A program made the position numbers and the translations under genes. Below the pieces are notes generated by a model. It was given only the letters and a program-made list of their open reading frames with translations. It was not told where the DNA came from and did not search any database. Below are positions 1-58,506 of a stretch of DNA of 64,000 bases, one piece after another. This DNA is from Podarcis vaucheri. Lineage: Eukaryota. The number at the start of each line of letters is the position of its first letter. The first letter of the stretch is position 1. Location: assembly GCA_965113315.1 (NCBI GenBank), contig OZ220365.1; one strand, given 5' to 3'.

Positions 1-711
1 CTCTAGTGAGACAGTTTGAAGGCAGATAGGGTCTCAGCCTGCATACCAGATGGAGCTTGTAAAAAGCTGCCCTGGACATAGAATTGACCTGCGCCTCCAT
101 GGACACCTGTGAGTCCAAAATGACTCCCAGGCTGTGCACCTGGTCCTTCAGGGGCAGTTACCCCATTGAGGACCAGGGAGTCTTCCACACCTGCCCACCT
201 GTCCCCCCAAAACAGTACTTCTGTCTTGTCAGGATTCAACCTCGATCTGTTAGCCACCATCCATCTTCCAACCACAGATACTCACAAAGGACCTTCACGG
301 CCTTCACTGGTTTGATTTGAAAGAGAGGTAGAGCTGCGTATCATCCACATATTGATGAACACCCAGCCCAAACCCCCTGATGATCTCTCCCAGCAGCTGC
401 ATGTAGATGTTGAAAAGCATGGGGGAGCGGACAGAACCCTGAGGCACCCCACAAGTGAGAGCCCAGGGGTCTGAACACTCATCCCCCACCACCACTTTCT
501 GAACACGGCCCAGGAGGAAGGAGCAGAAACACTGTATAACAGTGCCCCCAGCTCCCAGCCCCTCTAGATGGTCCAGAAGGATGTTATGGTCAATGGTATC
601 AAAAGCCGCTGAGAGATCCAGCAGAACTAGGAAACAGCTCTCACCTTTGTCCCTAGCCTGCCGGAGATCATCGACCAGTGCAACCAAGGCAGTTGAAGTT
701 GTGGTGCCCAT
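1..711 (-). mobile_element. L2-clade LINE fragment (RT region, frameshifted), runs off window start
   Basis: ORFs 304..711 and 3..275 give LLDLSAAFDTIDH, GVPQGS..SPMLFNIY, YVDDTQLY and LNPDKTEVL; closely similar to the copy at 9101-10003 where they overlap. Confidence 0.92.
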
Positions 712-5712: not shown

Positions 5713-5958
5713 CAGTGGTACCTCTGGTTGCAAACGGGATTCATTTCAGAGCCCCGTTCACATCCTGATCAGAACACAACCCACATTTGCACCCGCACGG
5801 GTCTCAATTCGCCACTTCTGCGCATGACATCATTTTGCGCATCAGCACATGTGTAAGCGGCGAAACCCTGAAGTAACCCTTTCCGGTACTTCCGGGTTGC
5901 CGTGGGACGCAACCTGAAAAGACGTAACCTGAACCGAACATAACAAGAAGTATGATTG
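5713..5958. mobile_element. Non-autonomous Tc1/mariner (Tigger-like) MITE
   Basis: TA-CAGTGGTACCTC start, degenerate inverted end GAAGTATGATTG-TA; same TIR family as 16034, 19299 and 40919. Confidence 0.75.
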
Positions 5959-9000: not shown

Positions 9001-9100
9001 AGAAGAAGAAGAAGAATGCCATGATATAATCACAAAACAGGTTTAAAACATATTGCACAATGCAATATCATTTGCTGCCCAAATACCTAGAGGGTGGGGT

Positions 9101-10003
9101 GTGTGAGTGTCTGGAGGTCCTGTGTGAGTGTCTGGAGGCGGTTGGAGGATGGATGGCGGCTAACAGATTGAGGTTGAATCCTGACAAGACAGAAGTACTG
9201 TTTTGGGGGGACAGGAGGCAGGCAGGTGTGGAAGACTCCCTGGTCCTCAATGGGGTAACTGTGCCCCTGAAGGACCAGGTGCGCAGCTTGGGAGTCATTT
9301 TGGACTCACAGCTGTCCATGGCGGCACAGGTCAAATCTGTTTACCAGCTCCATCTGGTACGTAGGCTGAGACCCTATCTGCCTGCAGACTGTCTCGCCAG
9401 AGTGGTGCATGCTCAGGTTATCTCCCGCTTGGACTACTGCAATGCGCTCTACGTGGGGCTACCTTTGAAGGTGACCCGGAAACTACAACTAATCCAGAAT
9501 GCGGCAGCTAGACTGGTGACTGGGAGTGGCCGCCGAGACCATATAACACCGGTCTTGAAAGACCTACATTGGCTCCCAGTACGTTTCCGAGCACAATTCA
9601 AAGTGTTGGTGCTGATCTTTAAAGCCCTAAACGGCCTCGGTCCAGTATATCTGAAGGAGCGTCTCCTCCCCCATCGTTCTGCCCGGACACTGAGGTCCAG
9701 CTCCGAGGGCCTTCTGGCAGTTCCCTCACTGCAAGAGGCCAAGTTACAGGGAACCAGGCAGAGGGCCTTCTCGGTAGTGGCGCCCGCCCTGTGGAACGCC
9801 CTCCCATCAGATGTCTAAGCGATAAACAACTACCTGACATTCAGAAGACATCTGAAGGCAGCCCTGTTCATGGAAGTTTTTAATATGTGACATTTTAGTG
9901 TATTTTCATCTTTGTTGGAAGCTGCCCAGAGTGGCTGGGGAAACCCAGCCAGATGGGCGGGGTACAAATAATAAATTATTATTGTATAATTATTATTATT
10001 ATT
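9101..10003 (+). mobile_element. L2-clade LINE, 5'-truncated, young; ORF2 C-terminus, 3' UTR and (TTA)n tail
   Basis: ORF 9060..9818: LNPDKTEVL, SRLDYCNALYVGLP, LQLIQNAAARLVTG, HITPVLKDLHWLPV; tail GGGCGGGGTACAAATAATAAATTATT; GTGTGAGTGTCTGGAGG duplicated at the 5' junction. Confidence 0.95.
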
Positions 10004-10153: not shown

Positions 10154-10521
10154 GGGACGCGGGTGGCACAGTGGGTAAAACCTCAGCACCTAGGGCTTGC
10201 CAATCGCATGGTCGGCGGTTCGAATCCCCGCAGCGGGGTGAGCTCCCGTCGTTCGGTCCCAGCTCCTGCCCACCTAGCAGTTCGAAAGCACCCCTAAGTG
10301 CAAGTAGATAAATGGGTACCGCTTTATAGCGGGAAGGTAAACAGCGTTTCCGTGTGCTGCGCTGGTGCTGGCTCGCCAGAGCAGCTTCGTCACACTGGCC
10401 ACGTGACCCGGAAGTGTCTCCGGACAGCGCTGGCCCCCGGCCTCTTAAGTGAGATGGGCACACAACCCTAGAGTTGGACACGACTGGCCCGTACGGGCAG
10501 GGGTACCTTTACCTTTACCTT
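10154..10521 (+). mobile_element. Sauria SINE
   Basis: GGGACGCGGGTGGC head, B-box GGTTCGAATCC, (ACCTTT)n tail, TSD CTATACTCTTT. Confidence 0.93.
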
Positions 10522-10534
10522 GCTATACTCTTTA

Positions 10535-10874
10535 GGGATGCAGGTGGTGCTGTGGGTTAAACCACAGAGCCGAGGACTTGCCGATCAGAAGGTCAGCGGT
10601 TCGAATCCCTGCGGCGGGGTGAGCTCCCGTTGCTTGGTCCCTGCTCCTGCCAACCTAGCAGTTCGAAAACACCTCAAAGTGCAAGTAGATAAATAGGCGG
10701 GAAGGTAAATGGTGTTTCCGTGCGCTGCTCTGGTTCGCCAGAAGCGGCTTAGTCATGCTGGCCACATGACCTGGAAGCTGTATGCCGGCTCCCTTGGCCA
10801 ATAAAGTGAGATGAGCACCGCAACCCCAGAGTCATCCATGACTGGACCTAATGGTCAGGAGTCCCTTTACCTTT
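10535..10874 (+). mobile_element. Sauria SINE (different subfamily variant)
   Basis: Same head, B-box and tail; followed by a third copy of the target ACTATACTCTTTA. Confidence 0.93.
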
Positions 10875-13019
10875 ACTATACTCTTTAACATTTGTCTGAT
10901 GAAGATAGGGATGTCCTAAGGAAAAGCAGGACATTCCAGGATCAAATCAGAAACCAGGATGGTTTCTGTAAATTCAGGACTGTCCCTGGAAAATAGGGAC
11001 ACTTGGAGGGTCTGCCTTTTGTCCAAACAACTTTCCATATAGTCTTAAAAGGCAGCCTCTTGAACTACACATTGCAATAGTCACTGGAGCACATAGACAA
11101 CTGGTTCAAGTTTATTCCCCCATCCAGATAGTCACAATTGAGATACCATCCAAAACGGTTCAAAGGCACTCCATGCCACTGTGTCTCCTTGTGCCTCTAA
11201 GGACATTGTTGGTTCCAAGAGTGGCCCCAAGCCGCACAACTTCTCCCTCAAGATAAATGTAACCCTATTCAGAACAGGAAGTTTTGTATTCATCTAGACA
11301 GAAGAACAGTGGAAGCTGCTAATGTTGTCTCAGTTTCATCTAAATGGACTTCACACTTTGTTTGCTCTAATCTAGCCTATTATCAAGACCAGGCACCAAT
11401 CCAGCATACCCACCCATTGCCTTAAGTGATAACAGTCTCCTCTACTGCACAGGGCTCTTTTAACAAGCTATTCTTCTGCATGTGTAAACCAGGCCTATAT
11501 TTATTCATCCAGCATGAGACATGGATCTGAAATGAAATGACTCAATTTACAACTTCATGCTGATCTTCTCTCCTTTATTCCTGAGATGGCAGCAGTAAAC
11601 CCTACAGCACCGCAAAAGCAGTTGGATATTTCCATTCACCCTATTCCTTCCTGTTTTTGAGAATGCAAGGATTTTTTTACACTTTTGTTTTTAAGCAAAG
11701 GATCTTATTCTGCCTTACCTATAGACATAAAAGTGAGCCAGCATCTATCCAATCTGCTGTCTCTTCATTGTTTAATCATCACTTTGCCTCCACCACATTG
11801 TTAGAAAAAGTGAGTCGCCTTTTTAAAAAGTATATTTTAAACCAATGTTTCTATTCTTATCTTGTTACTTATACTTAATAGTACCTTTTCATTTCTAAAA
11901 GAAGTATATTTCAGACATAATTCAATAGTGTTAGATGGGATAGTAAGAAGTAATTTCTTAGATGAGGTTAATTTCCAAAAAGGACTGTTAGTTAAAAAAC
12001 ACAGGAAACTCATCAGGCACATATCTATATTTTAATGTGATTGTGAAAATTAGTTATGACTTCAATCCTAACCCCACTTATCTGGGAGTAAGTTCCATTA
12101 ATATCTATTCTGTATGGTTAGGATTGCAATGTATGTTGTCAAGCAACATATTTGGAAATGCAGAAGGGTCTGTGAAAAATTAACATAACAATTTATTGAT
12201 GGCTCTTGGAAATATGGTTTCTTAGATCAAGAGTATGATACTACTTATGTGATAAGACTCTCCTGAATCTCTCTCACCAGAATGTCAAATTACTATAAAT
12301 ATTTCATCATTGCAATTCACTCTTTGTCCCTTCTTGTTAAAGTGATCACCTATAAAGTAAATTGTATTTACCTAAGCTTTAATTGCCCAAATTTGTATTT
12401 ATCTGAACTTTAATTGTCCAAACGTTTTTTTATATCTCCAATGCAAGTGATGTTCTTGAGTAACCATATGAAGAGAATGGTAATGTTCATCTGCTCAGGG
12501 CCTAAGATATGCCTTCTCAACAGATGAAATAATAAATTATTCACACAATTTACATTGGGTGCTTGAAAATAATAAAGTAAGTTAATGTGTGGGAATAAAT
12601 GGAAATACATCTAGATAGCTGATATCAAGAGACTAATCCTGACACACCACTTGTCATGGAAATCCCAGGGGGTGTGGGTGGGAGCAAGGTTTCATTCTGT
12701 GCAACACAAAAGCTTCCAGCTTGTATTATCATCCTTGATTTGTATTGTTAATGTTCTAAGATAAAAGATGACAATCTTGTGCCTTTGCCTATGGCTCATG
12801 TATCAATAACAAACAGGATAACTGTTCTTTACAGTAAGGCAGAAGAGCCACTCTATTAAAGATATCACCCAAGCTGAAAATCAGGCTCTAAAGGTCTAGA
12901 GACAAGTCTAAGGTTAAATACACTGACAGCAAGTTGGATACAGAACAGCAGTAGTTTCTGTGAGATTCTAGTCTATTGGGAGTGTTTTCAAGATTTTGTC
13001 TTAACTGCATGGGGCAGGA

Positions 13020-13305: not shown

Positions 13306-13384
13306 TCTGCAAGAATATCATAGAGGACTTTGTCCAAAATAAAAATTACCCATTACTATATAATGACATTATTTAAATATATTA

Positions 13385-13617
13385 TGTTGTTTAGTTGTGT
13401 CCGACTCTTCATGACCCCATGGACCAGAGCACGCCAGGCTCTCCTGTCGTACACTGCCTCCAACAGTTTGGTCAAACTCATGCTGGTAGCTTCGAGAACA
13501 CTGTCCAACATCTCGTCCTCTTCTTCTTGTGCCTTCCATCTTTCCCAACATCAAGGTCTTTTCCAGGGAGTCTTCTCTTCTCATGAGGTGGCCAAAGTAT
13601 TGGAGCCTCAGCTCCAA
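13385..13617 (-). mobile_element. BovB (RTE) LINE 3' fragment
   Basis: LRLQYFGHLMRREDSLEKTLMLGKMEG; matches the 3' end of the 37547 copy. Confidence 0.9.
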
Positions 13618-16033
13618 TATATAATATTATATATTAATATATCCAATATATTACATTATATATTACCATAATGAGACTGTTGGGTATTTGGATGTACTGT
13701 TTATTACTGATCCAACAGTTTAGGAGGGAAATAGTTTCTATTAATATAAATAAATCCAAACAGCAATGCTATTAAGGGCAACTAACGAGAAAATCAATGG
13801 GATTAACATCTTTATCTTAAACTCACCTGAAATGAAGGTCCATAAAAAAAATCAATGTGACTTCTATGTTGCTTTCATGGTTGAGAAAACAATCCAAATA
13901 CTTTGGTTAAGCCAAGATAACCGCAAGTGCATCACAGTTGAGGTAAGATCACATTTTTTTCTGTACAACTTTCACCCACTTTCTTATTGCTTTTGTGTGA
14001 TTGATATGAAAGGACAGAATTAATGCAGAGCTCTCAAGCATTATTGTTTTTGTCTCACTGTATATTTGTACTATATTTCATAATAATTTGGTCTTTAAAC
14101 TTAAATGTTATTAATATATCATGTGGATCTCAATGGCTTTCATGCTCTGATAATGGAGGTTGCAGCCTCTCCCTCTGTGTCCTATGACTCTGGTGATATT
14201 TTGCTTACCCTATCTTAGCAAAATAAAAGGTACCACTTAGGATGAAAAAAGGGACACTTTTGTGCAAGATTTTAACATTGGATTTAAGGTTGGATGCATT
14301 TGACCAGTCCAGTTTCCTCTTTGTTCCATCGGTGATACATTCCATTTTTGGTTTTTTTCTGTATGTACAGATAATTTCTCCTATGAGGTTTGCTTGGCTG
14401 CATCATTGAATGCATCCAGGTCCATTATTTCATGCAATAAAAATGAGCTTCCCTTTCACCAAAGTGCCCAGAGGAGGAAATAATCCTCCTCTGGATTGCA
14501 TACCTTCTACCCCCTCTCATCAGTTCAAAGAAAGGACATGGGATGGGATGAGCTTTTAATGATTTATGTGTTGGCATATCTCTCTGTAGCAACTCCCCAG
14601 AAACATTGAACTTCAACAGGCCATGACCAATTTGTTCCGTGTTCCTGGAAGCATGTCTGCAAACAGGAGGAGGAAGCTAAGGATACCTTGATGTAACTGA
14701 TTATTGTTTTCTGCTGGGTGTTGAGCACAAAAACCATTGGTGCCGAACTCGCATGTCAATTTCACTTTTGCAAGCTTCACACACCATAGCAGGATTATTT
14801 TGCTCCTTGTCTATACTGTAATGAGGTCATCTAAAAGTCCAGATCTAAGAATGTATCAAATTTCTTTCTGTAGAGACTTGTTCACATGTTACCTTTTTAA
14901 GGCATGCATCTAAAGCTAGATATAGATGAAGTGCTTTTTCATGTGTTTACCCCTAAGTAAACAACTGCATCTTGTTTCCACATTAATTTCCATTTTTAAA
15001 AATAAAACAATCCACACAAAAACAACTAAACAACACTTCACATTCAAATATGTATTTTCTCTCAAAGTATGCATTTTTTAAAAAAAGTACTGTAATAAAG
15101 TTTATTTGAGGTTAGAACTGCATTTGATATTAAGTGAAAACTCTGATGGGTAATGAAGTTGTGATCTGCATATCAGGCAGGACTTGTCCAGGCAGCAGAG
15201 CCACATCAACAGCCACCCAGTAGCAGATTCACTGCCACATCCCCAGAGCCGTAGCTCTGCGCCCCTGGCAGAACTGTCCAGATTGTGCCCCCTATCTTAA
15301 GGACAAATTAGCTCTTCTTTCCACCTCCCCTCCATCCCTCCCCCCATTCAATTCACCCTCTATTAAAAACCTTTTCTTATGAGGAAATAATCAATATTTT
15401 TATTTATGGACATATTTTTTAGCTGATTTTGCACGCCCCCTCGCCTGCACCTCTGGCGGGGGCCCACCTCACCACCCCCTAGCTACAGAGGGGAAGAGGG
15501 AGGAGCAAGACAGCATCAAAGCTGGGACTATGTGGACCTAGCAGGAAAGCTAATCATGTCTTCTACTGGTAAATTTCTGCATCCCACCCTCACAACCACC
15601 TTGCCGCTCCTCCCCAGCACAGAGAGGCTATTGTTGTTACTCTGCCTCCCAACCCCCAACAAGCCTCTCCTGCTGAACATCAGTTCAGGAGTTAGTGAAT
15701 ATGCTAGTTCACAATAGAATTCAGAAAGTTCAAAGACCACACTCCACAGAATACCATAGGAACATGACTAGAAGATGGATATTTTCTGTGGTTGCTCCTA
15801 CACCAACATCACCCACCTTCAAAGGTGAGCAGATACACCTCTTAGGGATTTTTGAAATATTAGGTGGCTTTGAAAGGCTTTTAATCAAATCAATAAACAA
15901 AACTTAAAACAGCCTAATTCAATTCAAAAAACTGTTTACATCAAAGAAGTATCACTAGTTGAATGTTTTAAGTTATTATCTCTCTCTCTATAAACTTGGA
16001 AGGGACTATGATTTCTACACTTTGAATGAGTTA

Positions 16034-16263
16034 CAGTGCTACCTTGGGTTACAGACGCTTCAGGTTATGCAATTTTGGGTTGCACACTGCACCAAACCTG
16101 GAAGTACCGGAACGGGTTACTTCCAGGTTTCGGTGCTCGCGCATGCACAGAAGCACCAAATTGTGACCCGCGCGTGCGCAGACGCGATGCTGCGGGTTGC
16201 AAACACTGTGGGTTGCGAACGTGCCTCCCACGCGGATCACATTCGCAGCTCGAGGTTCCACTA
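16034..16263. mobile_element. Tigger-like MITE
   Basis: TA-CAGTGCTACCTTG ... CGAGGTTCCACTA-TA. Confidence 0.75.
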
Positions 16264-16807
16264 TAATTGACTGTCAACTACAGGTGTATTACAACTGGTA
16301 TTTGTCTGCAGTCCCACGAATGCTTACCCCAAATGGAGTGCCATTGACATCAGTGGCATCAGGTGCCACATTTGCGCGGACAGGCAGAGTCCCCAGATCC
16401 CGCGCAGTCCCCCCCCATCATGTGAAATAACGACTCATGACAACTTGCTATGGGATTAAATTGGCCACAACTTTATTAAATTTCAGATGTGGGTAGACCT
16501 TGGCTCAGGCATTGGGCGTTCTCCCTCCCCAGTCCCCAGCCGGGGACCTAGGGAGCATCAGGGTCATCCAGTGTGTGTGTGGGGGGGATGGACCGGCTCT
16601 GGAGAACATATGTTCAAGCAGAGATGGCCACCCCCGTTGCGCCGCCGCCGCAGGGGAGAGCAATGACGACCTTTCGGCGTACGGTCAAAGCCTCCCTTCA
16701 GAAACCCCTTTAACGGGGAACCCTGGTATCGCCACCTCAAAGAGGAAGATGGACTAAAGGATTCCGCCCAAGGCCTGATACCGCCAAAGTTGTGACGTTT
16801 TGCTACG

Positions 16808-16846
16808 GGAAAGGCGAAACCTGCCAATGCAGGGAAATTCCTTTCC
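16808..16846 (-). ncRNA. ENE-like U-rich internal-loop RNA hairpin (copy A)
   Basis: Minus strand GGAAAGG-AAUUUC-CCUGC-AUUG-GCAGG-UUUCG-CCUUUCC: 7-bp stem, U-rich loop on both strands, 5-bp stem. Confidence 0.6.
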
Positions 16847-16885
16847 GGCCCTTTAACAGCGACCTTAACGTAGCAGCGCCCGCAT

Positions 16886-16939
16886 ACCTGTGAAGAAAAG
16901 TTAACCTGCAAAACCTGTGAAGAAAAGTTAACCTGCAAA
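16886..16939. repeat. 27-bp tandem duplication inside copy A
   Basis: ACCTGTGAAGAAAAGTTAACCTGCAAA x2, exact. Confidence 0.95.
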
Positions 16940-18239
16940 TAAGACATTAACTGAGGGTGGGTAGGGTGGGAGAAGCTCTGGAGCCAAGTGAGGATTCCCA
17001 GGTAAGATCCTCCCTCTATTGTGTGGGCAGGTAATCCCTCCCCTACCTGGCCTGGTCTCCTTGGCAACGCTTCCCCCAGGTGGGATTGGACAACTGACTG
17101 GGGTAGGCGGAGACCTCCAGGTATCCCACCTGCGTCCACGCAAAGGGTGCCCCCCGTTTTAAGCGTGGAGCGGTCATTCTCTCCCAGTTTTCCCCTGACA
17201 AATAATATGTCTCTTTGTCAACGATGGCCCACAGAAGCACTTCAAAAATATTAATTGGTGGGGTGAGCACAAACATGGAAGAGTTAATTACTACACTGGA
17301 GTGAAGTGATTGTCCTTAGGGGAAGATGACCTGTCAAGCGATAAAACTCACAAACAGCGCCTCATGAATATAAACACGGTTCACAGCTGACAGGATTATT
17401 TCAATGAGAGACCTCCAGGTCAAAGTGGCAGAAGTGAAAGTTCCTCACCCCTCACCTCTACGCATCATCAGCTAAAAGTGTTAGGGGATCTTGGGAATCG
17501 AGTGGCAAGATTTTTGGCCCAACGCATATGAGTCAGCACCTATGTGACAGCCATATGCAGTCTCCAATCATTAAATGGGCTATTTCCCCCCCTCTCTCCA
17601 TATGAAGCAGTCTTTGTCAGTTTGACAAGTGACTTTGTACAGGGTCAGTAAGCAAAGCTTGTACTTGAGGGCCTCCTCTCCCTCCTCCCCACCTTCTTGC
17701 CAGCATTTGGCTGAATTTAAAAACAGAAGCACAACCATGCCATCCTTATGCCTTTCTAAACAGCTTTAAGAAGGCATTTATTCTTCCCCAAAACCACCGT
17801 GTTCAGGGCTGCATGAAAACATGCTATTCGTGATTTTATTAAATGCTATTTATTTTCCACACAACAGCAGGTAGACTACTCCCAGCAATGGTTTAAAAGT
17901 ACCTCCAAGACTGTTGAGAGAGTGGGTGGTGGGGTGACAGTCTTTTACACGGGTATTGCTCTTGACAGGAAGTTTTATCTGAAGAAAATGAAGCAATTTT
18001 GATTCCTATATCAAATTACCCTTTATCAATCATTTAATACCAGACTTCTAATGTGCAGAACTATTTATAAAAAGGGCAAACAAGACAGATTCTCAGGGCT
18101 TCCTGCAGTAGACCAACATATGAATTCTTACATGCTTTGAGAATTGGAATGCCCTTGGCCCAATGCATGAAATGCATATTCAGTTAGCAGGGGTATATAA
18201 ATGGGCTCTACTTCAAAAGCTTTGGCTCTTCCCTAAAGG

Positions 18240-18400
18240 GAAGATACTCCAGTCTCATCAGTTTGGTCAAACCTTTCAGCACCTTTGCCAGCTCTACAAT
18301 ATTCTTTACGAGATGGTGCACCCAGAACTGTACACATTACTCCAAGTGTGGTATGTCAATAGATTTGTAGAAAACATTGTAACGCTGGCATTTTAATTTT
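18240..18400 (-). mobile_element. Old CR1 ORF2 fragment
   Basis: CCCAGAACTGTACACATTACTCCAAGTGTGG corresponds to a degenerate PHLEYCVQFW motif on the minus strand. Confidence 0.55.
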
Positions 18401-18508
18401 TGATCCCTTTCCCATCAAGATAATCCCTAGCATTGCACTTTTCTGTTACAGATGATGTACACTGGCTTCATGTAGTGATACATTGTGATCTTTTTGTTTG
18501 TTCTTTAT

Positions 18509-19295
18509 TTGCGTGTTCAGACACAGAAACCTCCCCCTAAATAAATTCATACTTGTCTCAAAATTTGGTTTTGGTTTTTGGCAGAATTTAGGCCACAACT
18601 TTATTGATTACAGAAAGTGAATGGTTGCATAGGCTCTGGTTTGACTAGCTGCCTGCCATGCAGATAACACTGACCCAGGGTTCCAGCATAGGTCAGCCAA
18701 GGGTGAACATCTGGATAAGTGGAAAGCTGGGAACAGGCTATCTCCGCCACCCAAATGTCCCCCTGGACTCAGGCACAGGCACAACCCCCTCTCAGGGGTT
18801 GACCAAACCAAGTTGAGTCCCTGGATTCCTTTAATGGAATACCCTTCACATAGGGATGGCGAGAGCGTTCTCCCATCCCTATCACCTGAACCAGTACCTA
18901 TCCGCAACCTTACAAGTTGTGATGATTTGCTACGCAGCAGGTGAAACCCAAATGGCAACAGCCAATCTGCCAAGTGGGAAAATTCCTGCCGTGTCCCTGT
19001 CCCAATGACAGACGACGGCATAGCAAGGTCAAACGCATAAGCCCTAAAAATAGGGAGGGGTGGGCGGGTGTTCCAAATGCATGCACCAAAAGAAGAAGCT
19101 CTGGGTCACGTGCATGGGCATAAATAGGTCCCTCAATCCCTTTGGACTCTGCCCCATTGGCCCAATTGAACCCAGCATTGAGGGACCTCCAATCGGGTGT
19201 TGTGGCTGACCAATCAAACCCACCCACAACACAGGGTGTCAGTTTCCAGGTCTCACTGCAATATGTGCCCTCTTTAAAGGAGGACCCAATTTCCA
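18509..19295 (-). mobile_element. Non-coding retroelement terminal segment, copy B
   Basis: Same motif blocks as copy A; AATAAA at 18600-18605 (minus); CCAAT boxes and TATTTAT in the 5' part. Confidence 0.7.
18935..18991 (-). ncRNA. ENE-like U-rich internal-loop hairpin (copy B)
   Basis: CGGCAGG-AAUUUU-CCCA-cu-UGGCA-loop-UGCCA-uu-UGGG-UUUCA-CCUGCUG; stem sequences differ from copy A but still pair. Confidence 0.6.
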
Positions 19296-19298
19296 AAA

Positions 19299-20090
19299 CA
19301 GTGGTTCCTTGGTTCTCAAATTTAATCTGTTCCGGAAGTCTGTTCCAAAACCAAAGCGTTCCAAAACCAAGGTGCACTTTCCCAAAGAAAGTAAATGGAT
19401 TACTGTAAAATGGATTAATCCGTTCCAGACTTTTAAAAGCAACCCCTGAAACAGAAATTTAACATGAATTTTACTAACAAGACCATTGATCCATAAAACG
19501 AAAGCAATAATCAACGTTCTGTGCTATAAATTAAATAAGACAATATTGTAGATGATAAAAATTAAAATTAACTTTTTTTCTTACCTGCACTGATGATAAT
19601 CATTGTTTGGATGGGGGCTTTTATCCATTTCTGTGGTCACACAATCAATCAATCAATCAATCAATCATAAAACGAAAAACAAGCCATAGTCACAAAAATG
19701 AAAAAGCCACACAAACAAAAGCGCAGAAAATAGCAAAAACAAAAGCACTAAATATCACCTCAGAACACTGCAATCAGAAATGGAAGGCTTTAATTAAGGG
19801 GGGGGGACTTAAATTAGCTGTGAAAGGGTAAAAACTGGAGGAAAAAATCCTTAATTATGAAAGGGGGGACTTAAATGAGCTGCACAGGGGTAAAAACAGA
19901 AGGAAGGAAGCCTTAATTACAATTGGGGGGGGGACCTCAAATGAGCTGTGCAACAGTGAAAACGGAAGCTCAGGAGCACTTTCGGCTTCCAAGGCAAAGT
20001 TTGATAACCGGAACACCTACTTCCGGTTTAGCAGCGTTTGAGTTCTGAGTTGTTCGGGAACTAAGCTGTTTGAAAACCATGGTACCACTG
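19299..20090. mobile_element. Long Tigger-like non-autonomous DNA transposon with three internal ~60-bp repeats
   Basis: CAGTGGTTCCTTGG ... CCATGGTACCACTG-TA TIRs; TTAATTA..GGGGGGAC..AAAT(T/G)AGCTG x3 at about 19790-19970. Confidence 0.8.
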
Positions 20091-25240: not shown

Positions 25241-25995
25241 CAACTCACACTGTGCACCTATATTTCTTCTGTCCCATTTCCAATAGAAAAGCCCCTTGCC
25301 CCCCAACTGAACCATGACAATAGTGGTGGATGTGTTCACACAACAGAGAAAGATTTTATATCACCTTCAACTTGACAAAATTGTCTTTTGTTTCCATTTC
25401 ACATCTGGAAAGGCTCTCTCCCAAGTGTCTACCTGCCACATTTCAAGTAGCAGGGAATTATAGATGAGGCCTTCTGATTGCAATCTCAAAGTCAGTGCAG
25501 GCTCTTTTGAGCAGTGGGGGGGGGGAATGTGGTGTTCCTAATATTTCTGGACTCCAACTCTCTTCTGACTGCCTCTGCATTAGAGCTCTGAAGGGCAAAG
25601 CCATCAGTTTGTGTTATGAATTAGGAGCCAGGGAAGTTTTCCAAAGACAGTTACTAAATGCTACATGTAATGGTAGCCTGATAGGATCATGTGTCACTGA
25701 TCCTGAAAATACTACACTTGCCACCAGCGATCTCACAGGCCAAACACAAAGTGAATGTTGTAGCATATAAAGTCCTAAATGGCTTGGGATCCTGAAAGAG
25801 CACCTTTCCCCCATAACATGCACCTTGGACACCATGACTGGCAGGTATGGCATTGACCCATGACAGGGCCTTGTCAGGGGTGGTTCCCCATTTGTGAACT
25901 GCCCTTACTGGTGAGGTGCATCTTCCTCTCTCATTTTTTATTTATAGGATGAATGTTAAAACATATTCTTGTATTATTATTATTATTATTATTAT

Positions 25996-26453
25996 TTAGT
26001 CGTTTAGTCGTGTCCGACTCTTCGTGACCCCATGGACCAGAGCACGCCAGGCACTCCTGTCTTCCACTGCCTCCCGCAGTTTGGTCAGACTCATGCTGGT
26101 AGCTTCGAGAACACTATCCAACCATCTCATCCTCTGTCGTCCCCTTCTCCTTGTGCCCTCCATCTTTCCCAACATCAGGGTCTTTTCCAGGGACTCTTCT
26201 CTTCTCATGAGGTGGCCAAAGTATTGGAGCCTCAGCTTCACGATCTGTCCTTCCAGTGAGCACTCAGTGAGCTGATTTCCTTAAGAATGGATAGGTTTGA
26301 TCTTCTTGCAGTCCATGGGACTCTCAAGAGTCTTCTCCAGCACCATAATTCAAAAGCATCAATTCTTCGGCGATCAGCCTTCTTTATGGTCCAGCTCTCA
26401 CTTCCATACATCACTACTGGTTAAACCATAGCTTTAACTATACAGACCTTTGT
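25996..26453 (-). mobile_element. BovB LINE 3' fragment
   Basis: ORF 25996..26241 KLRLQYFGHLMRR...WRALVHGVTKSRTRLND. Confidence 0.93.
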
Positions 26454-37546: not shown

Positions 37547-38660
37547 AGTTCCAGAAAGACATCTACTTCTGCTTCATTGACTATGCAAAAGCCTTTGACT
37601 GTGTTGACCACAGCAAACTATGGCAAGTTCTTAAAGAAATGGGAGTGCCTGATCACCTCATCTGTCTCCTGCGAAATCTCTATGTGGGACAAGAAGCTAC
37701 AGTTAGAACTGGATATGGAACAACTGATTGGTTCCAAATTGGGAAAGGAGTACGGCAAGGCTGTATATTGTCTCCCTGCTTATTTAACTTATATGCAGAA
37801 TTCATCATGCGAAAGGCTGGGCTGGATGAATCCCAAGCCGGAATTAAGATTGCCGGAAGAAATATCAACAACCTCAGATATGCAGATGACACAACCTTGA
37901 TGGCAGAAAGTGAAGAGGAATTAAAGAACCTTTTAATGAGGGTGAAAGAGGAGAGCGCAAAATATGGTCTGAAGCTCAACATCAAAAAAACGAAGATCAT
38001 GGCCACTGGGCCCATCACCTCCTGGCAAATAGATGGGGAAGAAATGGAGGCAGTGAGAGATTTTACTTTCTTGGGCTCCATGATCAGTGCAGATGGTGAC
38101 AGCAGTCACGAAATTAAAAGACGCCTGCTCCTTGGGAGAAAGGCGATGGCAAGCCTACACAACATCTTAAAAAGCAGAGACATCACCTTGCCAACAAAGG
38201 TCCGTATAGTAAAAACCATGGTTTTCCCAGTAGTGATGTATGGAAGTGAGAGCTGGACCATAAAGAAGGCTGATCGCCGAAGAATTGATGCTTTTGAATT
38301 ATGGTGCTGGAGGAGACTCTTGAGAGTCCCATGGACTGCAAGAAGATCAAACCTCTCCATTCTGAAGGAAATCAGCCCTGAGTGCTCACTGGAAGGACAG
38401 ATCGTGAAGCTGAGGCTCCAATACTTTGGCCACCTCATGAGAAGAGAGGACTCCCTGGAAAAGACCCTGATGTTGGGAAAGATGGAGGGCACAAGGAGAA
38501 GGGGATGACAGAGAATGAGATGGTTGGATGGTGTTCTTGAAGCTACTAGCATGAGTTTGATCAAACTGCGGGAGGCAGTGGAGGACAGAAGTGCCTGGCG
38601 TGCTCTGGTCCATGGGGTCACGAAGAGTCGGACACGACTAAACGACTAAACAACAACAAC
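37547..38660 (+). mobile_element. BovB (RTE clade) LINE, 5'-truncated, young; RT domain
   Basis: FIDYAKAFD, GVRQGCILSPCLFNLY, LRYADD; ORF 37639..38508 ends at a TGA (CGA in the 25996 copy) near the C-terminus; (CAA)n tail. Confidence 0.97.
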
Positions 38661-39291
38661 AAATATGGTTCGCTGTTCAAAGGCTGGGGGGGGGGAGAGA
38701 GAGAGAGTTGAAAATTGTGCAGAGTGTGCCTAAAATAGGTTTCTGAAATGCTTTATTCAAATGGTGGAAGGGGCTAAATATGTGATGTATATTGCAATAA
38801 TTTATACTATATCTATGCCATCAGAAACATGTTCTCTTTTCTATTAATAAGCAACTAACCCAGCACAATCCTTTACATGTCTACCCAGCAGTCCCATTAA
38901 CTTGAACAGGGCTTACTCCCAGATAAGTAGCTATAGCAGAGATAGTCAGTGTAATCCAGACGTTGCTGGACTGCAACTTCCATCATCCCTGACCATTGGC
39001 CATGATGCCTGGGGCTGATGGGAGTTGTAGTCCAGCTGTATCTGAAGGCCACCATGCAAGCTGTTTGTGAAGGAATCTGTATTTTTTATTTTTGTGCGGT
39101 ATCTGGAATTTCCCATGATGATTAACATCTTGTTATTAAATGGTCAACTAAGAAACAAGACTAAGGATGACCTTTGAGGATTTACTTCTGAAGAAATGGG
39201 CTAGGGGTACATTGAAAGGCTGCAATTCTATGCACCTTACTTGGGATAAAGTTTCACTGAAGTCAACGGGAGTGCCATGAGCCTTGCAACC

Positions 39292-40918: not shown

Positions 40919-41160
40919 CAGTGGTACCTTGGGTTACATACGCTTCAGGTTACATACGCTTCAGGTTACACACTCCGCTAACCCAGAAATAGTACCTCGG
41001 GCTAAGAACTTTGCTTCAGGATGAGAACAGAAATCGGGCTCCGGTGGCGCAGCGGCAGCAAGAGGCCCCATTAGCTAAAGTGGTACCTCAGGTTAAGAAC
41101 AGTTTCAGGTTAAGAACAGACCTCCAGAATGAATTAAGTTCTTAACCAGAGGTACCACTG
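40919..41160. mobile_element. Tigger-like MITE
   Basis: CAGTGGTACCTTGG...AGAGGTACCACTG-TA; internal GGTTACATACGCTTCA x2. Confidence 0.85.
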
Positions 41161-41295: not shown

Positions 41296-41646
41296 GACGC
41301 GGGTGTCACTGTGGGTTAAACCACAGAGCCTAGGACTTGCCGATCAGAAGGTCGGTGGTTCGAATCCCCGCGATGGGGTGAGCTCCTGTTGCTCAGTCCC
41401 TGCTCCTGCCAACCTAGCAGTTCGAAAGCACACAGTGCAAGTAGATAAATAGGTACCGCTTCGACGGGAAGGTAAACAGCGTTTCTGTGCGCTGCTCTGG
41501 TTCACCAGAAGCAGCTTAGTCATGCTGGCCACATGACCTGGAAGCTGTACGCCAGCTCCCTCGGCCAATAAAGCGAGATGAGCGCCGCAACCCCAGAGTC
41601 GGCCATGACTGGACCTAATGGTCAGGGGTCCCTTCACCTTTACCTT
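41296..41646 (+). mobile_element. Sauria SINE
   Basis: Head, B-box and tail; TSD TAACTTCCTA/TAACCTCCTA. Confidence 0.93.
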
Positions 41647-42247: not shown

Positions 42248-42608
42248 GCACAGGTGGCACTGTGGTCTAAACCACAGAGCCTAGGGCTTGCCAATCGGAA
42301 GGTCGGCGGTTCAAATCCCCGTGGCGGGGTGAGCTCCTGTTGCTCAGTCCCAGCTCCTGTCTACCTAGCAGTTCAAAAGCATGTCAAAGTGCAAGTAGAT
42401 AAATAGGTACCGCTCCAGCGGGAAGGTAAATGGCATTTCCATGTGCTGCTCTGGTTCGCCAGAAGCGGCTTAATCATGTTGGCCACATGACCCGGAAGCT
42501 GTCTGCAGACAAACACCAGCTCCCTTGGCCTATAGAGCGAGATGAGCACGCAACCCCAGAGTTGTCCATAACTGGACTTAATGGTCACGGGTACCTTTAC
42601 CTTTACTT
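42248..42608 (+). mobile_element. Sauria SINE
   Basis: Head, B-box and tail; TSD TAAGTCCCA. Confidence 0.93.
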
Positions 42609-44044
42609 TAAGTCCCACTTGTGTGTTCACTGGGGGCTTTCTCCCAGAAAAGTGTGCATGGCCTTGCAAACTGGAGCCATTAAAATAAATGCCCATAACA
42701 ATACAACCCTAAATGACAAGTACCCATGAATGCTTAATGCTAACTATTAAGAGCCAGGAAAGACAAAAATATTTTGCATCTGCTCTAGAAAATGCTAAGG
42801 CTTAGATAGTGGAAGGCCTCCAGTGGGCATACATTGATGACATTGTTCATACCTTTTAGAATGGATGTTGTACTCAGAAATGTTCCATCTTAAAGACTAT
42901 GATGGAAGAGAAGGAACAGACTTGTCTCAAAGGTACATTGAGGGTCCAAATGGTTTGCATTTCTAAGCATTTCTCCCCATTCTTCCTTTTCAAATCTCTG
43001 TAATTTGTCAATTATGTTAAAGATCATTCCCCATTCACTTAATCAGACCTGTGCCAATGACAATGGTTTGAAGAAGCTGTTTTGTGAAGGCAAATGACAA
43101 TGATGACTTGTTTACGTGATTCATCTTTAGAGATAGACAAATCACAAATATTATTCCACATTAGTAGACATGAACAATAATTAGATACTCTAATAAGGAA
43201 CAAAGCGAAATCATATCTTGGATTTTAACATGGGGGAATATATTAGTCTCTAAATGTGTTTCATCCTCTGCCAGTTGGTACAACTGCTTCTAATGTGTCT
43301 CCAGTGATATTAAAATCAGTTTCAGGACTTCCATGTTTTAACGTGCGTATCTAGCTCTCATTCCTCCCTGCTTCGAATCACAGTCAGCCTCGAATCTGTT
43401 GCTACTACAATAACACATTTGTACATTTTCTTTAAGGCAGGGTTTTTTTTTACCATGCAGTTAAGTCAGGATTGTGTGTTTCTTCTATGTGTGTTGTTGT
43501 TTTGTTGTTGTTGTTGTTTAATCACTTTTAACTATTAGCTTTTATCCCTATCCTCTTTAAGTCTGATGTGCTTTATTTTATTTGCATGTTTTTATCTTAC
43601 ACTGGTCTGTGACCGTAATCAAGTTCGATGATGGTGGTGGTTCTTCTTTCCTTCCTGGAAATTTAATTTTAATGGAAATCCATGCTGACACCTCTTGTGG
43701 TGCTGGTACCCAGTGCAGCTAAACAAGTCACACTTCTCTAAAACTGACTCTGGTAGGTGGCCAGTTACCAATTGCCCAAAAGAAAATAGAAAATATATAC
43801 ACTACCAAAGCAGAGGACAAAATATGGCACAACAGCACACATGATAAATGCAAGGCACAAATAATTACTAGGAGCTAAATTTCACAGAAATTAAATTTCC
43901 CATCCATATTATCCCAAATAAAACAAGTTCATTCAATTAACTTGCACCCTATGTCCAGATAATCAGTTCCTTTTCAATTAATTTATCCCTGATTAATTAC
44001 CCCATTCATCAATTGACAGCTGCAGAGGGCAACTGCTCTTATGT

Positions 44045-46662: not shown

Positions 46663-47419
46663 TGTCAGAGCTGCTTCCAGATCCTAGCTCACAGAGGATC
46701 ACGCTAGCCAGCAATCACTTTGTAAAAGTCTTTATTGAGTTACAGTTTCCATTCTCCAGCTGCTGCGTGCAACTCTACGTCTTATGGGTTAGACCGGCGA
46801 AGCTCCGTCTGAGTCTCCGCCCCTTGTACACCAACTTAATATCCTAGCCTTACTCCACCTTTTCCGCCTGACTGTTCTTCTCTGGGTCCCTCTGCCCCCC
46901 TGGGTCTCTTCCTTCCTGGATTCTTCTGACGCCGACCCCCCGAACCCTCCTGCCTCCTTGCGCCGGGCTTTAGGACCTGGCTCCCTTTCCGGGCTGCTTA
47001 CTGCGCCACCTTCCTGTGCATTTGAACTTGGCACGCGCGCCCAACCTTCCACTTTCCGTCTGACCGTTTCTTCGCTCCCCGATGGAGGTGTGGCCACTCC
47101 TGACTCGTGCCCTCCCTCCTGTTGTGAGCTGCCAGCGCTTGATACCTGACGCCCTTCCTCTCCCCTGCTCTCTGTTGGTGACGCTGGTCCCGATTTCCAA
47201 CTGCTCCCCTCTGAGCCCCCTCTGGCCCTTTCCTCCTGGGGTGTCCCCCTAGGCTCCCCCCTTGCCCTGGCCACTGGTGCTCCTTTCTGTGAATCTTCTG
47301 ATTCACTGGAAAGACTCGGAGATCTCGGGTCGTCGTCATCACTCATCCTTTCTTCTGCCTCCTCCCCCTCGCTCTCTGTTTCCTCCCTTGCCCTTGCCTC
47401 TGCTCCTGAACCCCTGACA
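46663..47419 (-). mobile_element. Young solo LTR (Gypsy-like), 757 bp
   Basis: TGTCAG...CTGACA inverted termini; perfect 5-bp TSD GGTGT (46658-46662, 47420-47424); AATAAA on the minus strand at 46731-46736; CpGs retained. Confidence 0.9.
46789..47346 (-). CDS. Putative LTR-encoded low-complexity protein (185 aa from the internal ATG; frame open to the LTR edge)
   Basis: MSDDDDPRSPSLSSESEDS...RRTVRRKRWSKARILSW...; stop about 50 nt before the LTR AATAAA; no homology recognised. Confidence 0.35.
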   Translation of the reverse strand: MSDDDDPRSPSLSSESEDSQKGAPVARARGEPRGTPQEERARGGSEGSSWKSGPASPTESRGEEGRQVSSAGSSQQEGGHESGVATPPSGSEETVRRKVEGWARVPSSNAQEGGAVSSPEREPGPKARRKEAGGFGGSASEESRKEETQGGRGTQRRTVRRKRWSKARILSWCTRGGDSDGASPV

Positions 47420-49100
47420 GGTGTATTTACGTCTGTATGAGAACAGGATGCAGGGTTTTTGAGCTGCCATTTTGTGACAGCCTTAGTCTCTAACAACCCC
47501 TAGTCATAATGTTGATGTTCCTCTGGAATACAAATGTAACCATTGCTTTTAACAACAGATGAACACAAGTGTATTACTTTCCTACTGAAATAGATCGGAT
47601 TCTGGCTATAACCACTTAGAGACTTACTTCACACACTTAGGTTCTTCTTGTGTGAAAAATTTCATTTTGTCTGGTTAGAGACATATTCTGTTCCAATGCT
47701 TCTTTTCAATAAAATTATAATATTAAATGTCATTACCAATGCATGCTATCCAACTGCTGTTTACACACAAAAGCATTGGCATGAAAGTGGCTCGTTTTTA
47801 ATTTTGCCACAGCCATGCACTTGGAACAAAAGTAATGTGACAGATCAACTGGAACCCATGCATGAATTCCAGCTGGAAAGCACAATCCTTGCATTTTGCA
47901 CTTCTCTATCAATCTTTTGGCAGCAAAAGTGCTACAGCTAAGAAGAGGGAGACCCAGCTTTCAACATTATTCATGTGTCTTGACCTTAAATTGCTCCTTT
48001 CCCCAGATGGCCATCATCACTCGGTCCTGAAATGCTAACTGGCACCACTGGATTTGTTATGTCGCTGAGCAGCAATTTCTCCTAAATTTAGAACCATATG
48101 CAGTGTTTTGTGACTGCGTAAGTGGTGCCAAGGCACACATTAAGGAACGGAGAAGCTGCACATCTGAGGAAGCAAGTAAATGGGTGCTTGTTATCTAGCA
48201 GAGCTTCCTGGCATGGATTCTGGTGTCCTTTGGTTTTCTTTTCAGATGTCTCCTCCCACATAGCATCCGTCTAAGCTAAGGTTTCCATACAGGTCCCTGC
48301 ACCCAACTGCCATAAATCACTATATGAAATTCCAAACTGAGGAGACAACTGGTTTTCTTAGCAACAAGTGCCCAAGCCTACATTTATACAGTCTAATGGA
48401 GAAATGCCTTTTTAAACTATATGCGACCAACAGAAATGGGGGGGGGGTGGAGCTTCAGGAAATGATGGCAAGAGAAGTGTGCTGGTAGAAGGTTTATTGC
48501 AAGCCTTGGAGGTGGGGTGGGGTGGCAAGCATTCGCTGGACTGATTTGTTAATTCTCTTTCTGAGCAATGCCACAGAGTGTTCTCAATGTGCATCTAGGA
48601 AGCAAACTGAAACAAACAACAATTTTTCAAGCTGACACATTACAATTCAATTTCTCAGGGGACTATTTTAATTTGGATTCACACACCATGCAGTGCCGTG
48701 ATGTTCATCAAACTCAGCCCATGAAATGTGACTTTGCATGCAGAACTACTTCCAAATTGCAATGATGTAAGTGTGGTCTTGCTGCATCAGACCAACAGGG
48801 AAGATCCCTCCTTGTTGAGGCCTGTATTTCTGCAGGGGAAATCTATCAGGGGCTGCATTCTGGTGGCAGATGTGGCCAGAATCAGTGGTGGGCAGACCCA
48901 GAATCAAAAGGGGGTGGGGCCACCTGCCTGCCTGCCTGCCTCTCTCTCTCTCTCTCTCTCTTCCTCATCACCCAGAAGGATGACAAGGGGGGACAAATTA
49001 TTCTTGCTAGAGTTCAGAGCTGAACATTTGCAGACAGCTTTCCTCCCTTCCATCATACCATCTATTTCAGTTCCTTTACCAACGACCCCACTCCATTATT

Positions 49101-52247: not shown

Positions 52248-52596
52248 GTAAAGGTAAAGGGACCCCTGACCATTAGGTCCTGTCGTGACCGACTCTGGGA
52301 TTGCAGCGCTCATCTTGCTTTATTGGCCAAGGGAACCGGCATACAGCTTCCGGGTCACGTGGCCAGCATGACTAAGCCGCTTCTGGCGAACCAGAGCAGC
52401 ACATGGAAACGCTGTTTACCTTCCCGCCAGAGCGGTGCCTATTTATCTACTTGCACTTTGACATGCTTTCGAACTGCTAGGTTGGCAGGAGCAGGGACTG
52501 AACAACGGGAGCTCACCCCATCGCAGGGATTCGAACTGCCGACATTCTGATCGGCAAGCCCAAGAGGTTCAGTGGTTTAGACCACAGCACCACTTG
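52248..52596 (-). mobile_element. Sauria SINE
   Basis: GTAAAGGTAAAGG tail and GGGATTCGAAC B-box, reverse complemented. Confidence 0.92.
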
Positions 52597-56735: not shown

Positions 56736-57989
56736 TAATTTTCTTATCCTACCACCACCACCACAGCAGCAGTACAGATCGTGGATTTAGATTGCTTTGT
56801 TATTGTTTCAATTTAGGGAGGAAAAACCTAACTTTGCATATCTACTGAGGGCATCTGAGCTGGTTCCCCATCACTGACCTAAACATTCATGTTCTGGAAG
56901 CACTTACTGACTGAACATGGGACAGCAGTCTACAGTCACATGGGCATGTATTCTGAGCCAGCATAGTAACAGTGATGAAAAAAAGAGGGAGAGCTAAAAA
57001 TGAGCACATTACCCCTGGGAAGAGATATCTGGTACTGTGCTCAGTGTGGAGCATTGGTAGCTTATGCATAGACATATGCATAAGCTACCAGTGGCACAGA
57101 CATTTTCTGTGGCACAGACAGCTCAAACACATAGAAAATAGATAGTATTACAGATTTTAGTGTTAAGGAAGAGGGGTGGGATTAGAACAATGACATATTT
57201 ACAGTTGCCTTAGGAATCAAAATAAAACTGGCAAACTTCAGAATATTTATAGATTACCGAACATAACAGAGGTAATGTTTAGCTGTCATATTTTTCAATT
57301 TTCAGCTGTTAGGGACAAAAGCTAGAGATTTCACAGTACTGCTCCAAGATATCTTCATTATAAAGGGGATTTTTTTCCAGTCTGTCTATTGTTTTTTGAA
57401 GTATTCCATTTTCTGCACTTCCAATTTAACACCCCACTATTCATTTATCACTGTAGGGCATCGTGGACAGCTGCAAACTAAAGATTCAATGGGATATTGG
57501 CAGGCGCTTCTCCCAGAAATTTAATTTTGCCCCAGGATACAGCTACAGACTAATTTTGCCTAATGAGCAAATGCACTAGAAGTTGGGTGTTTGTTTTGTG
57601 GTTTGCTCTTGTTGATCTCCCCAGTAATACTATGCAAATCCTTTGCTTGACATCATAATTTGCTTTTTTAAAAAAAACATTTCATTTTATTCCTTCAGCT
57701 AGATCTAAGTAGCTTTGAAAATGGGACCACAACTCCCTTTCTTCTTTCATGCTGTTCAGTTTTTGTAAAAATTAGGTTGGTGCTACAAATTAGAATTCAG
57801 GCAAGTTTTTCCTGTGACATAAAATATGAACAAAATTCACATGCATATAGTCTGGGAGCCCTGCTCCATGTGGATATGGTCCGGTGTGATTACACAAAAA
57901 AAGATGGAGTATTCTATGTTTAATAGTAAAATGGGGTGTATGGCTGAGGAGTACAGAAAGCTCACTGCTTGTCCCTCATACATACAAGA

Positions 57990-58506
57990 GTGACCTGTTT
58001 CCCCACAACTCCTCTCCAGTAGTGACAGGAGTTTTTTCTAATTGGCAAATTGGCACCAGCCTCTTGGTTTTTTTCGTCTACCTCGTAGCAATCGTCACAA
58101 CTTTCTTGGTATATGGCGGTTAGGTATTGGAATGTGGTGTTGATGTATGGAAGGGCAAGGTGTGGCCATTGCCTACCCCTTCACTTATGGGTATTCCGTT
58201 AAAGGAATCTGGTGGTCGTGGATCCTGTCTGATGCCCTGTGGCGGAGGGCCATGGCACGACCCTCGGTGACATCAGGGGGGAGCTTATAGTTGTATTTGC
58301 ATCAAAAGGCTCCCCCTACTGGTGGTTAACCCCTCATCAGGCTCATCCCTCTAGGAGTGGGTGGAGTCAAATTTGCTGTGGTCCAATGCCTAAGCCAATA
58401 CCTTCTCACATGCTGTAATCAATAAAGTTGTGACCTTTTCTAACCTAATATACTATGTCCACGTGTCTTCATTCCCCCAAGCGGGGATTGGGTCCTCGAA
58501 TCACAA
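57990..58506 (+). mobile_element. Non-coding retroelement terminal segment, copy C (older; 5' limit uncertain)
   Basis: CAGGAGTTTTTT..TTTTTTTCGTCT..CGTAGCAATCGTCACAACTTT and AATAAAGTTGTGACC (58421); ends ..TCACAA. Confidence 0.65.
58023..58083 (+). ncRNA. Degenerate ENE-like hairpin (copy C)
   Basis: AG-U6 / U7-CG internal loop; upper stem CUAA/UUGG plus GGC/GCC; lower stem only 4 of 7 paired. Confidence 0.4.

Follow-up and report, generated by a model that had tools for sequence, protein, structure and literature searches.

A U-rich-loop RNA arm within a structured domain of an abundant, terminal-repeat-like lizard repeat family

Results

Repeats and reading frames of the window

The window, a stretch of 64,000 nucleotides of Podarcis vaucheri (contig OZ220365.1 of assembly GCA_965113315.1), contains no N. 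A 289-aa reverse-transcriptase-like ORF with a YADD motif, apparently of the RTE/BovB type, lies at 37639-38508 (+); this element has inverted arms at 25983-26453 and 38194-38662 and copies at 13380-13616, and its 3' region occurs three times in the window with 89-95% identity. Two LINE reverse-transcriptase fragments of opposite orientation are located at 304-711 (-) and 9060-9818 (+), with inverted arms at 1-273 and 9140-9402 and flanks that are 88-95% complementary. Copies of a SINE-like repeat at 10162-10880, 41302-41646, 42253-42613, and 52241-52564 carry (ACCTTT)n-type tails, which we take to be typical of squamate SINEs. The ORF at 46789-47496 (-), 235 aa long and of low complexity with much Ser, Glu, Arg, and Gly, may represent an exon or may have arisen by chance in GC-rich DNA. 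At 19801-19924, a 62-nt unit is repeated in tandem (two copies, 77% alike) beside a (GATT)n microsatellite near 19650.

The repeat family examined here is present in three copies, designated A, B, and C. Another repeat family, with the perfect palindrome AACCTGGAAGTAACCCGTTCCGGTACTTCCAGGTT and CCGGAAGT motifs, is found at 16000-16270 (-), 19330-20090 (-), 40919-40952, and 5861-5898, and lies directly 3' of copy A and directly 5' of copy B. The features of the three copies are as follows.

16371..17183 (-): copy A, a terminal-repeat-like repeat unit of about 0.8 kb; edges approximate, from contig depth, single-copy contig ends, and RNA-read loose ends
16869..16875 (-): 5' strand (UGCUACG) of the basal stem P0, paired with CGUAGCA at 16801-16807 in both MFE and centroid
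16847..16864 (-): small 5' hairpin of the three-way junction, predicted with upstream context
16808..16846 (-): the arm, with 7-bp outer helix, AAUUUC/UUUCG internal loop, 5-bp inner helix, and AUUG loop; it folds, and its helices are kept in copy B with three pairs changed on both sides
16801..16807 (-): 3' strand (CGUAGCA) of P0, within the near-invariant island CGUAGCAA; invariant in the three copies and paired
16785..16796 (-): 5' strand of the long-range helix, GUCACAACUUUG, in which CACAACUU is invariant in the three copies
16701..16723 (-): hairpin 2 with conserved GUUAAA loop, in all three domain folds
16464..16477 (-): AAUAAA (16477-16472) and 3' strand of the long-range helix (16475-16464), with AATAAAGTTGTG(G/A)CC invariant in the three copies
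18508..19300 (-): copy B, repeat unit, with arm at 18935-18991; 5' edge uncertain
18914-18922 with 18593-18601 (-): long-range helix of copy B, with AAUAAA at 18605-18600
57960..58470 (+): copy C, edges uncertain, with degenerate arm at 58023-58083 carrying U6 and U7
58094-58104 with 58424-58434 (+): long-range helix of copy C, with AAUAAA at 58421-58426

A hairpin with facing U-runs upstream of a poly(A) signal

The minus strand at 16808-16846 reads GGAAAGG AAUUUC CCUGC AUUG GCAGG UUUCG CCUUUCC. A preliminary description of the sequence had drawn two perfect helices around an internal loop on this strand, and the MFE structure is exactly that, with helices of 7 and 5 bp separated by a 6/5-nt internal loop. 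Its energy is -17.2 kcal/mol, the MFE accounts for 93% of the ensemble, and the folding z is -3.57, with an equally good fold in 1 of 200 dinucleotide shuffles. The AATAAA reported downstream at 16472-16477 was confirmed on the minus strand, 331 nt 3' of the arm. Both window strands were scanned for the same architecture, defined as perfect helices of 7 and 5 bp, internal loops of 3-8 nt each containing UUU, and an apical segment of 3-40 nt. The sole site in the window was 16808-16846. Since dinucleotide-shuffled windows yielded a mean of 0.16 such sites (at least one in 3 of 25 shuffles), the arm as a single copy is not significant alone, and its significance comes from the existence of homologous copies.

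Abundance and edges of the repeat

Onto 16250-19250 were mapped the contigs of one genomic run and of two probable RNA contig sets, together with the reads of one raw RNA-seq run. On copies A and B, 7,718 contig pieces of the genomic run were placed at a likeness of at least 80%, with a summed depth of 1e4 to 2.8e5; in the single-copy 1.3 kb that separates the two, depth was about 30. The repeat family is very abundant, with thousands of contig pieces in genomic runs. For copy A, the summed contig depth was 1e4-2.3e5 inside and about 30 in the single-copy flanks; single-copy contigs stop at 16407 and resume at 17153, and loose ends of RNA reads fall at 16371 and 17178. Edges defined by depth lay near 16371-16377 and 17178-17183 for copy A, and at 18508 for the 3' side of copy B. 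The 3' ends of both copies are ..CGCA/AA, about 100 nt past AATAAA. The arm, described initially as part of a retroelement end, is thus located mid-unit in an abundant terminal repeat.

The deepest bins included the arm bin and the poly(A) bin, as would fit if these parts are the best conserved from one subfamily to the next. None of the best-supported differences listed for the mapped contigs fell inside the arm of copy A or of copy B; therefore, the window copies resemble their families there. No fourth copy was found in the window by nhmmer or by a covariance model, and a 20-mer of the poly(A) island, searched against metagenome and viral contigs, gave one chance match, in an AT-rich microbial contig (L001).

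Runs X1-X14, labelled as seven organisms, hold 49-82% of the 31-mers sampled from 16250-19250. If these shares reflect sequence identity, several closely related species would have in common the A and B insertions together with the intervening single-copy DNA.

Conserved islands and compensated pairing in the arm

Pairwise identity among copies A, B, and C was just 45-50% over the alignable part, on which four near-invariant islands stood out. The first is the arm with its flank (..GGAAUUU..UUGGCA..UUUC.CC..CGUAGCAA..UCACAACUU), the second a small hairpin with an invariant GUUAAA loop, the third a stretch containing CCAAU, and the fourth AAUAAAGUUGUG(G/A)CC. As judged from the sequences, such islands on a near-random background look like the divergence of active lineages under constraint, and not like the decay of one master copy.

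Copies A and B have the same arm architecture, with the inner helix rebuilt in copy B. The outer helices were compared without gaps, in a register set by the conserved flanks, with the pairs numbered from the loop outward:

Outer pair 1: A G-C, B G-C
Outer pair 2: A G-C, B G-C
Outer pair 3: A A-U, B A-U
Outer pair 4: A A-U, B C-G
Outer pair 5: A A-U, B G-C
Outer pair 6: A G-C, B G.U
Outer pair 7: A G-C, B C-G

Three pairs are thus changed on both sides and one on a single side, and pairing is always kept. The inner helix is not position-homologous between the two copies: GCAGG pairs with upstream CCUGC in copy A, whereas copy B has about 22 extra bases and its UUGGCAG pairs with a new downstream strand.

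The arm was retained by RNAalifold on the three-sequence alignment, where all 38 cells with letters on both sides were paired, copy C being gapped out of four outer-helix pairs. When the 3' partner was slid by 1-3 columns, pairing fell to 30-60%. Four pairs carried double changes, a result reached by 15 of 500 column shuffles. The covariation that the preliminary description would look for across copies is thus visible in the three copies of the window, as a suggestive and not decisive signal, because n is 3 and the structure was derived from the same sequences.

Facing U-runs are found on both loop strands in all copies. Counted on the 5' and 3' strands, the tracts are 3/3 in copy A, as short as first described, 4/3 in copy B, and 6/7 in copy C, in which the helices are absent as such. 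The helices of copy C retain about three pairs each beside the U6 and U7 runs, and the arm fold did not form there (z +1.13 and -0.39). At least one extra subfamily was recognized from the loose-end consensus at 18957 (four contigs, sense), which reads AGGAAUUUUU-CCAUUUGGCUG.., joined to ..UGCCAUUUGGGUUUCACCUGCUGCG. Its arm has five U's on the 5' strand and again UUUC on the 3' strand (5/3). The arm is probably an RNA structure under selection.

ORFs run over the arm in copy A (16564-17139) and copy B (18608-19021). A protein-coding reading was rejected on comparison by hand, in which the frames agree at TTGGCAG and differ at CGTAGCA and at the GTTAAAGG island; no protein relatives were found for the copy A ORF.

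A three-way junction and a long-range helix to the poly(A) signal

With upstream context, copies A and B both fold into a three-way junction composed of P0, a small 5' hairpin, and the arm, which stacks directly on P0. The homologous P0 stem of copy B is UUGCUAUGC/GCGUAGCAA, and a hairpin of other sequence stands where copy A has its small 5' hairpin. A candidate A-tract in cis, the CAAAA just after the arm folding back as in MALAT1, was ruled out, as CGUAGCA there is paired in P0. Just upstream of the junction, in copy A only, a stretch of about 27 nt is tandemly duplicated (TTTTGCAGGTTAACTTTTCTTCACAGG twice, 16886-16940, minus strand).

Four bases past the junction, copy A carries GUCACAACUUU, which can pair with AAAGUUGUG(G/A)C of the poly(A) signal. 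The invariant CACAACUU has its complement, AAGUUGUG, at the poly(A) signal, and this pairing was retained in the RNAalifold consensus. The resulting helix is 12 bp long in copy A, 9 in copy B, and 11 in copy C, where a G-to-A change turns a U.G pair into U-A. It was present in the MFE of copies B and C and in the alignment consensus, and absent from the whole-domain MFE of copy A. Because both 9-mers are invariant, the long-range helix is beyond the support of covariation; going by the sequences, it appears very unlikely that two conserved islands are mutually complementary by accident. The 3' partner, AATAAAGTTGTG(G/A)CC, is common to other subfamilies, as seen from loose ends at 18605.

The long-range helix closes a strongly structured region of about 350 nt. 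For the whole domain of about 420 nt, which has the junction at its 5' edge, z values were -3.98 in A, -4.78 in B, and -2.20 in C. Two pairs of hairpin 2 are double-changed between copy A (CCCC/GGGG) and copies B and C (AUUCC/GGAAU). The sense (minus) strand folds better than the antisense by 6-7 kcal/mol, because several pairs are G.U. This strand bias, together with T-runs of the same strand on either side of the loop, argues for an RNA feature rather than one of duplex DNA.

An LTR-like element

In copies A and B the poly(A) signal is inside the repeat and is followed by a short U5-like tail, as in an LTR. Such an interior signal fits a terminal repeat with an R/U5-like tail and not a LINE or SINE end, because a non-LTR element would lose its own end. 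At the depth-defined edges, which are good to a few bases, neither a convincing TG start (of TG..CA ends) nor a target-site duplication was found, and next to the three copies no coding region or interior was found. The repeat is LTR-like, and the split direct repeat of a tyrosine-recombinase element is a possible alternative; absence of a target duplication would weakly suit a split direct repeat of the Ngaro type.

Two more specific assignments were tried and rejected. After copy A, TGGGGGGGGACTGCGCGGGATC resembled a PBS-Pro with leader, making A a 5' LTR, but read depth places this stretch within the repeat, and copies B and C have its homologue. Copies A and B as the two LTRs of one provirus are at odds with their identity of about 45% and with the single-copy state of the 1.3 kb between them.

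RNA reads over copies A and B

The raw RNA-seq run contributed 238 reads on 16250-19250, three quarters of which continue into unlike sequence. They came from both strands, with some sense bias in copy B. Among these sparse reads, no pile of RNA 3' ends was seen at the presumed poly(A) site in 16250-19250. The AATAAAG, with CCAAT boxes before it, could be a TATA-like promoter element, instead of or besides a poly(A) signal.

Discussion

A tentative role in 3'-end control

The reading that we favour, tentatively and at somewhat less than even confidence, is that the domain acts in cis to control the 3' end, and that the arm with its U-rich loop serves as a binding platform. We infer that RNA of the family is produced and ends at the site marked by the hexamer. 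In the proposed mechanism, GUCACAACUUU would pair with AAAGUUGUGRC, which overlaps and follows the AAUAAA hexamer, and the RNA, once folded, would therefore have its cleavage and poly(A) site beside the arm. Access to the hexamer would be set by the closing helix. The arm would most probably bind a U-rich-RNA-binding protein, such as a processing or stability factor; binding of a few A's of the tail is the less probable variant.

Known viral 3' ends offer partial parallels. In HIV-1, a U-rich upstream element (USE) precedes the hexamer, and the poly(A) hairpin occludes the hexamer by base pairing as a means of regulation. The lizard module would share with these a U-rich RNA that precedes the hexamer and occurs in the 3' repeat copy alone, and pairing of the hexamer itself. 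The USEs known so far are linear and lie no more than about 100 nt from the hexamer, whereas the U's of the lizard arm are in an internal loop 331 nt away and would be brought near by folding. The Rex-responsive element of HTLV-1 and the Rec-responsive element of HERV-K are large structured domains in or beside the LTRs, near the poly(A) signal. They resemble the lizard domain as multi-helix terminal-repeat domains of several hundred nucleotides, whose folding alters how the 3'-end signals are placed in space. The HTLV-1 fold forms a bridge between AAUAAA and the cleavage site; in the lizard domain the hexamer is itself the 3' strand of the closing helix. The lizard element has no known Rex- or Rec-like protein, and shows no similarity to these elements in sequence or model.

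Comparison with ENEs

The preliminary description had called the arm an ENE-like element that stabilises the RNA of its own family. Hallmarks of ENEs are a U-rich internal loop between short helices, loop-adjacent G-C pairs that serve in A-minor contacts, proximity to the 3' end, and triple-helix formation that depends on the tail (PMC7583470, PMC13541005, PMC12501189). An ENE here would clamp its own poly(A) tail in the U-rich loop as U.A-U triples, blocking deadenylation and 3' decay, with the long-range helix delivering the tail to the loop. We regard this as unlikely, though several properties of the arm speak for it. An internal loop with facing U-runs lies between two helices in copies A and B, each helix being closed by two G-C pairs; U-runs occupy both strands in every copy, with the run of five on the 5' strand of the extra subfamily at 18957; and in the modelled fold the long-range helix would put the cleavage site within about 15-30 nt of the arm. 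Such elements are known in the LTRs of plant and fungal elements and are predicted in stickleback retroviruses (PMC13541005, PMC7583470), and natural triple helices of three U.A-U triples occur, for example in telomerase RNA (PMC7583470).

Against an ENE stands first the length of the tracts. In copy A, copy B, and the extra subfamily, the conserved UUUC of the 3' strand limits the facing triples to three at most. The five U.A-U triples of PAN are accompanied by three A-minor triples, and reporter tests of MALAT1 indicated a need for at least four base triples (PMC7583470). The U-tracts of the arm are shorter than both of these. A helix of three triples would be physically feasible by analogy with telomerase RNA (PMC7583470). 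AA and CG (or CA) intervene between the U's and the G-C pairs of the lower stem that would be expected to give A-minor contacts, and copy C, with its U6 and U7, has lost the helices and does not form the internal loop (z +1.13). Along the sequence, 331 nt separate the arm from the hexamer, and the arm is part of a three-way junction in a larger domain, not a free-standing stem-loop. Covariation supports the helices, weakly with n of 3. Rfam 15, whichever ENE models it holds, gave no family at gathering score and, for each of the three copies, none at E<=10, so that the comparison with curated covariance models yielded no match; no tRNA-like or other known RNA family was found either. On tract length the arm falls outside the ENEs compared, and the evidence is too thin for the label. 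What stands of the original proposal is the helices, the G-C closure, the facing U-runs, and the compensation in copy B; the short tracts, the blank Rfam search, and the arm's place in a junction weigh on the other side.

The closest single comparison is the ENE of KSHV PAN, which is likewise a stem-loop with U's on both strands of the internal loop, G-C closure on both sides, and a place upstream of the poly(A) site. In PAN, five U.A-U triples are directly beside the A-minor stem (PMC7583470), whereas the lizard arm has three facing U's that are two non-U bases away from the lower stem. It also differs from PAN in belonging to a three-way junction and in lying 331 nt from the hexamer, with a proximity that depends on the long-range helix and tail binding that is only hypothetical. 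Among transposable elements, ENEs have been described for TWIFB1, Copia93/Evade, and plant and fungal elements with LTR-embedded copies, besides the stickleback predictions (PMC12501189, PMC13541005, PMC7583470). The lizard arm resembles these in its 3'-terminal place in a retroelement, some of them being inside the LTR, and in the proposed protection of the element's own polyadenylated RNA (PMC12501189, PMC13541005, PMC7583470). They are mostly double-domain, with longer U-tracts, and several have been validated by reporters or melting, in contrast to the single loop and short tracts of the lizard arm, which is a prediction. Because stickleback fish retroviruses are already listed among the ENE predictions (PMC7583470), an ENE in a vertebrate retroelement would not be the first; the initial statement was that no description was known for this vertebrate family. 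The triple-helix reviews that we searched for lizards or reptiles held no mention of them. We know of no earlier squamate case that is ENE-like.

A more specific form, which we consider rather improbable, is a miniature ENE: a clamp of three U.A-U triples set in the three-way junction, which would receive the start of the tail as the long-range helix folds the cleavage site back, and would protect the RNA of a very successful vertebrate family. If true, this would be a structurally new coupling of an ENE to its tail.

Other explanations

The domain may instead be a recognition structure for the replication machinery of the element, in packaging, priming, or template switching of reverse transcriptase, or a structure for nuclear export. 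A 420-nt, strongly structured multi-helix domain matches in size and style the structured elements in or near some retroviral LTRs, and the arm is one among several conserved helices, including hairpin 2 with its invariant GUUAAA loop. What makes us judge this unlikely as well is that no coding region or partner protein is found here, that the blank Rfam result provides no tie to a known response element, and that pairing with the AAUAAA region makes 3'-end formation the more direct interpretation.

That the arm has no function, being a chance hairpin in a stretch conserved for other reasons, with compensation as an accident of three sequences, is a still more doubtful explanation. The motif's chance rate of about 0.16 per window, the absence of the fold from copy C, and the number of sequences, three only, all leave room for it; yet the architecture recurs at the homologous place in copy B despite changed helices, several other nearby helices have double changes, and the domains fold far better than shuffles.

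Least probable of all, and in our view very unlikely, is a site acting in DNA, with U3-like enhancer motifs or a recombinase site and an incidental hairpin: although GGAATTTCC is similar to a Rel/NF-kB site and TTGGCA to NFI half-sites, AGGAATTTCC is present in copy A, two direct ATTGGC repeats are spaced 8 bp apart in copies B and C, and the region is upstream of CCAAT boxes and a possibly TATA-like AATAAAG, the T-run in the Rel-like motif varies (3, 4, 5, and 6), which a fixed 10-bp site could not tolerate, the outer helix changes in sequence with pairing kept, the G.U pairs are valid on one strand only, and the T-runs are on the same strand on both sides, not palindromic.

Implications for the repeat family

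Structured RNA modules in terminal repeats govern whether the transcripts of a retroelement are processed, kept, and copied. The family described here is among the most abundant repeats on the window, so that whatever its domain does has worked very well. Should the arm clamp A's, stabilisation of the ENE type would extend to reptile elements, and a short clamp would be workable when a long-range helix positions the tail. Should the arm bind a processing factor, in line with the 3'-end control module that we favour, it would be a clear natural case in which folding brings an upstream U-rich element to the poly(A) site.
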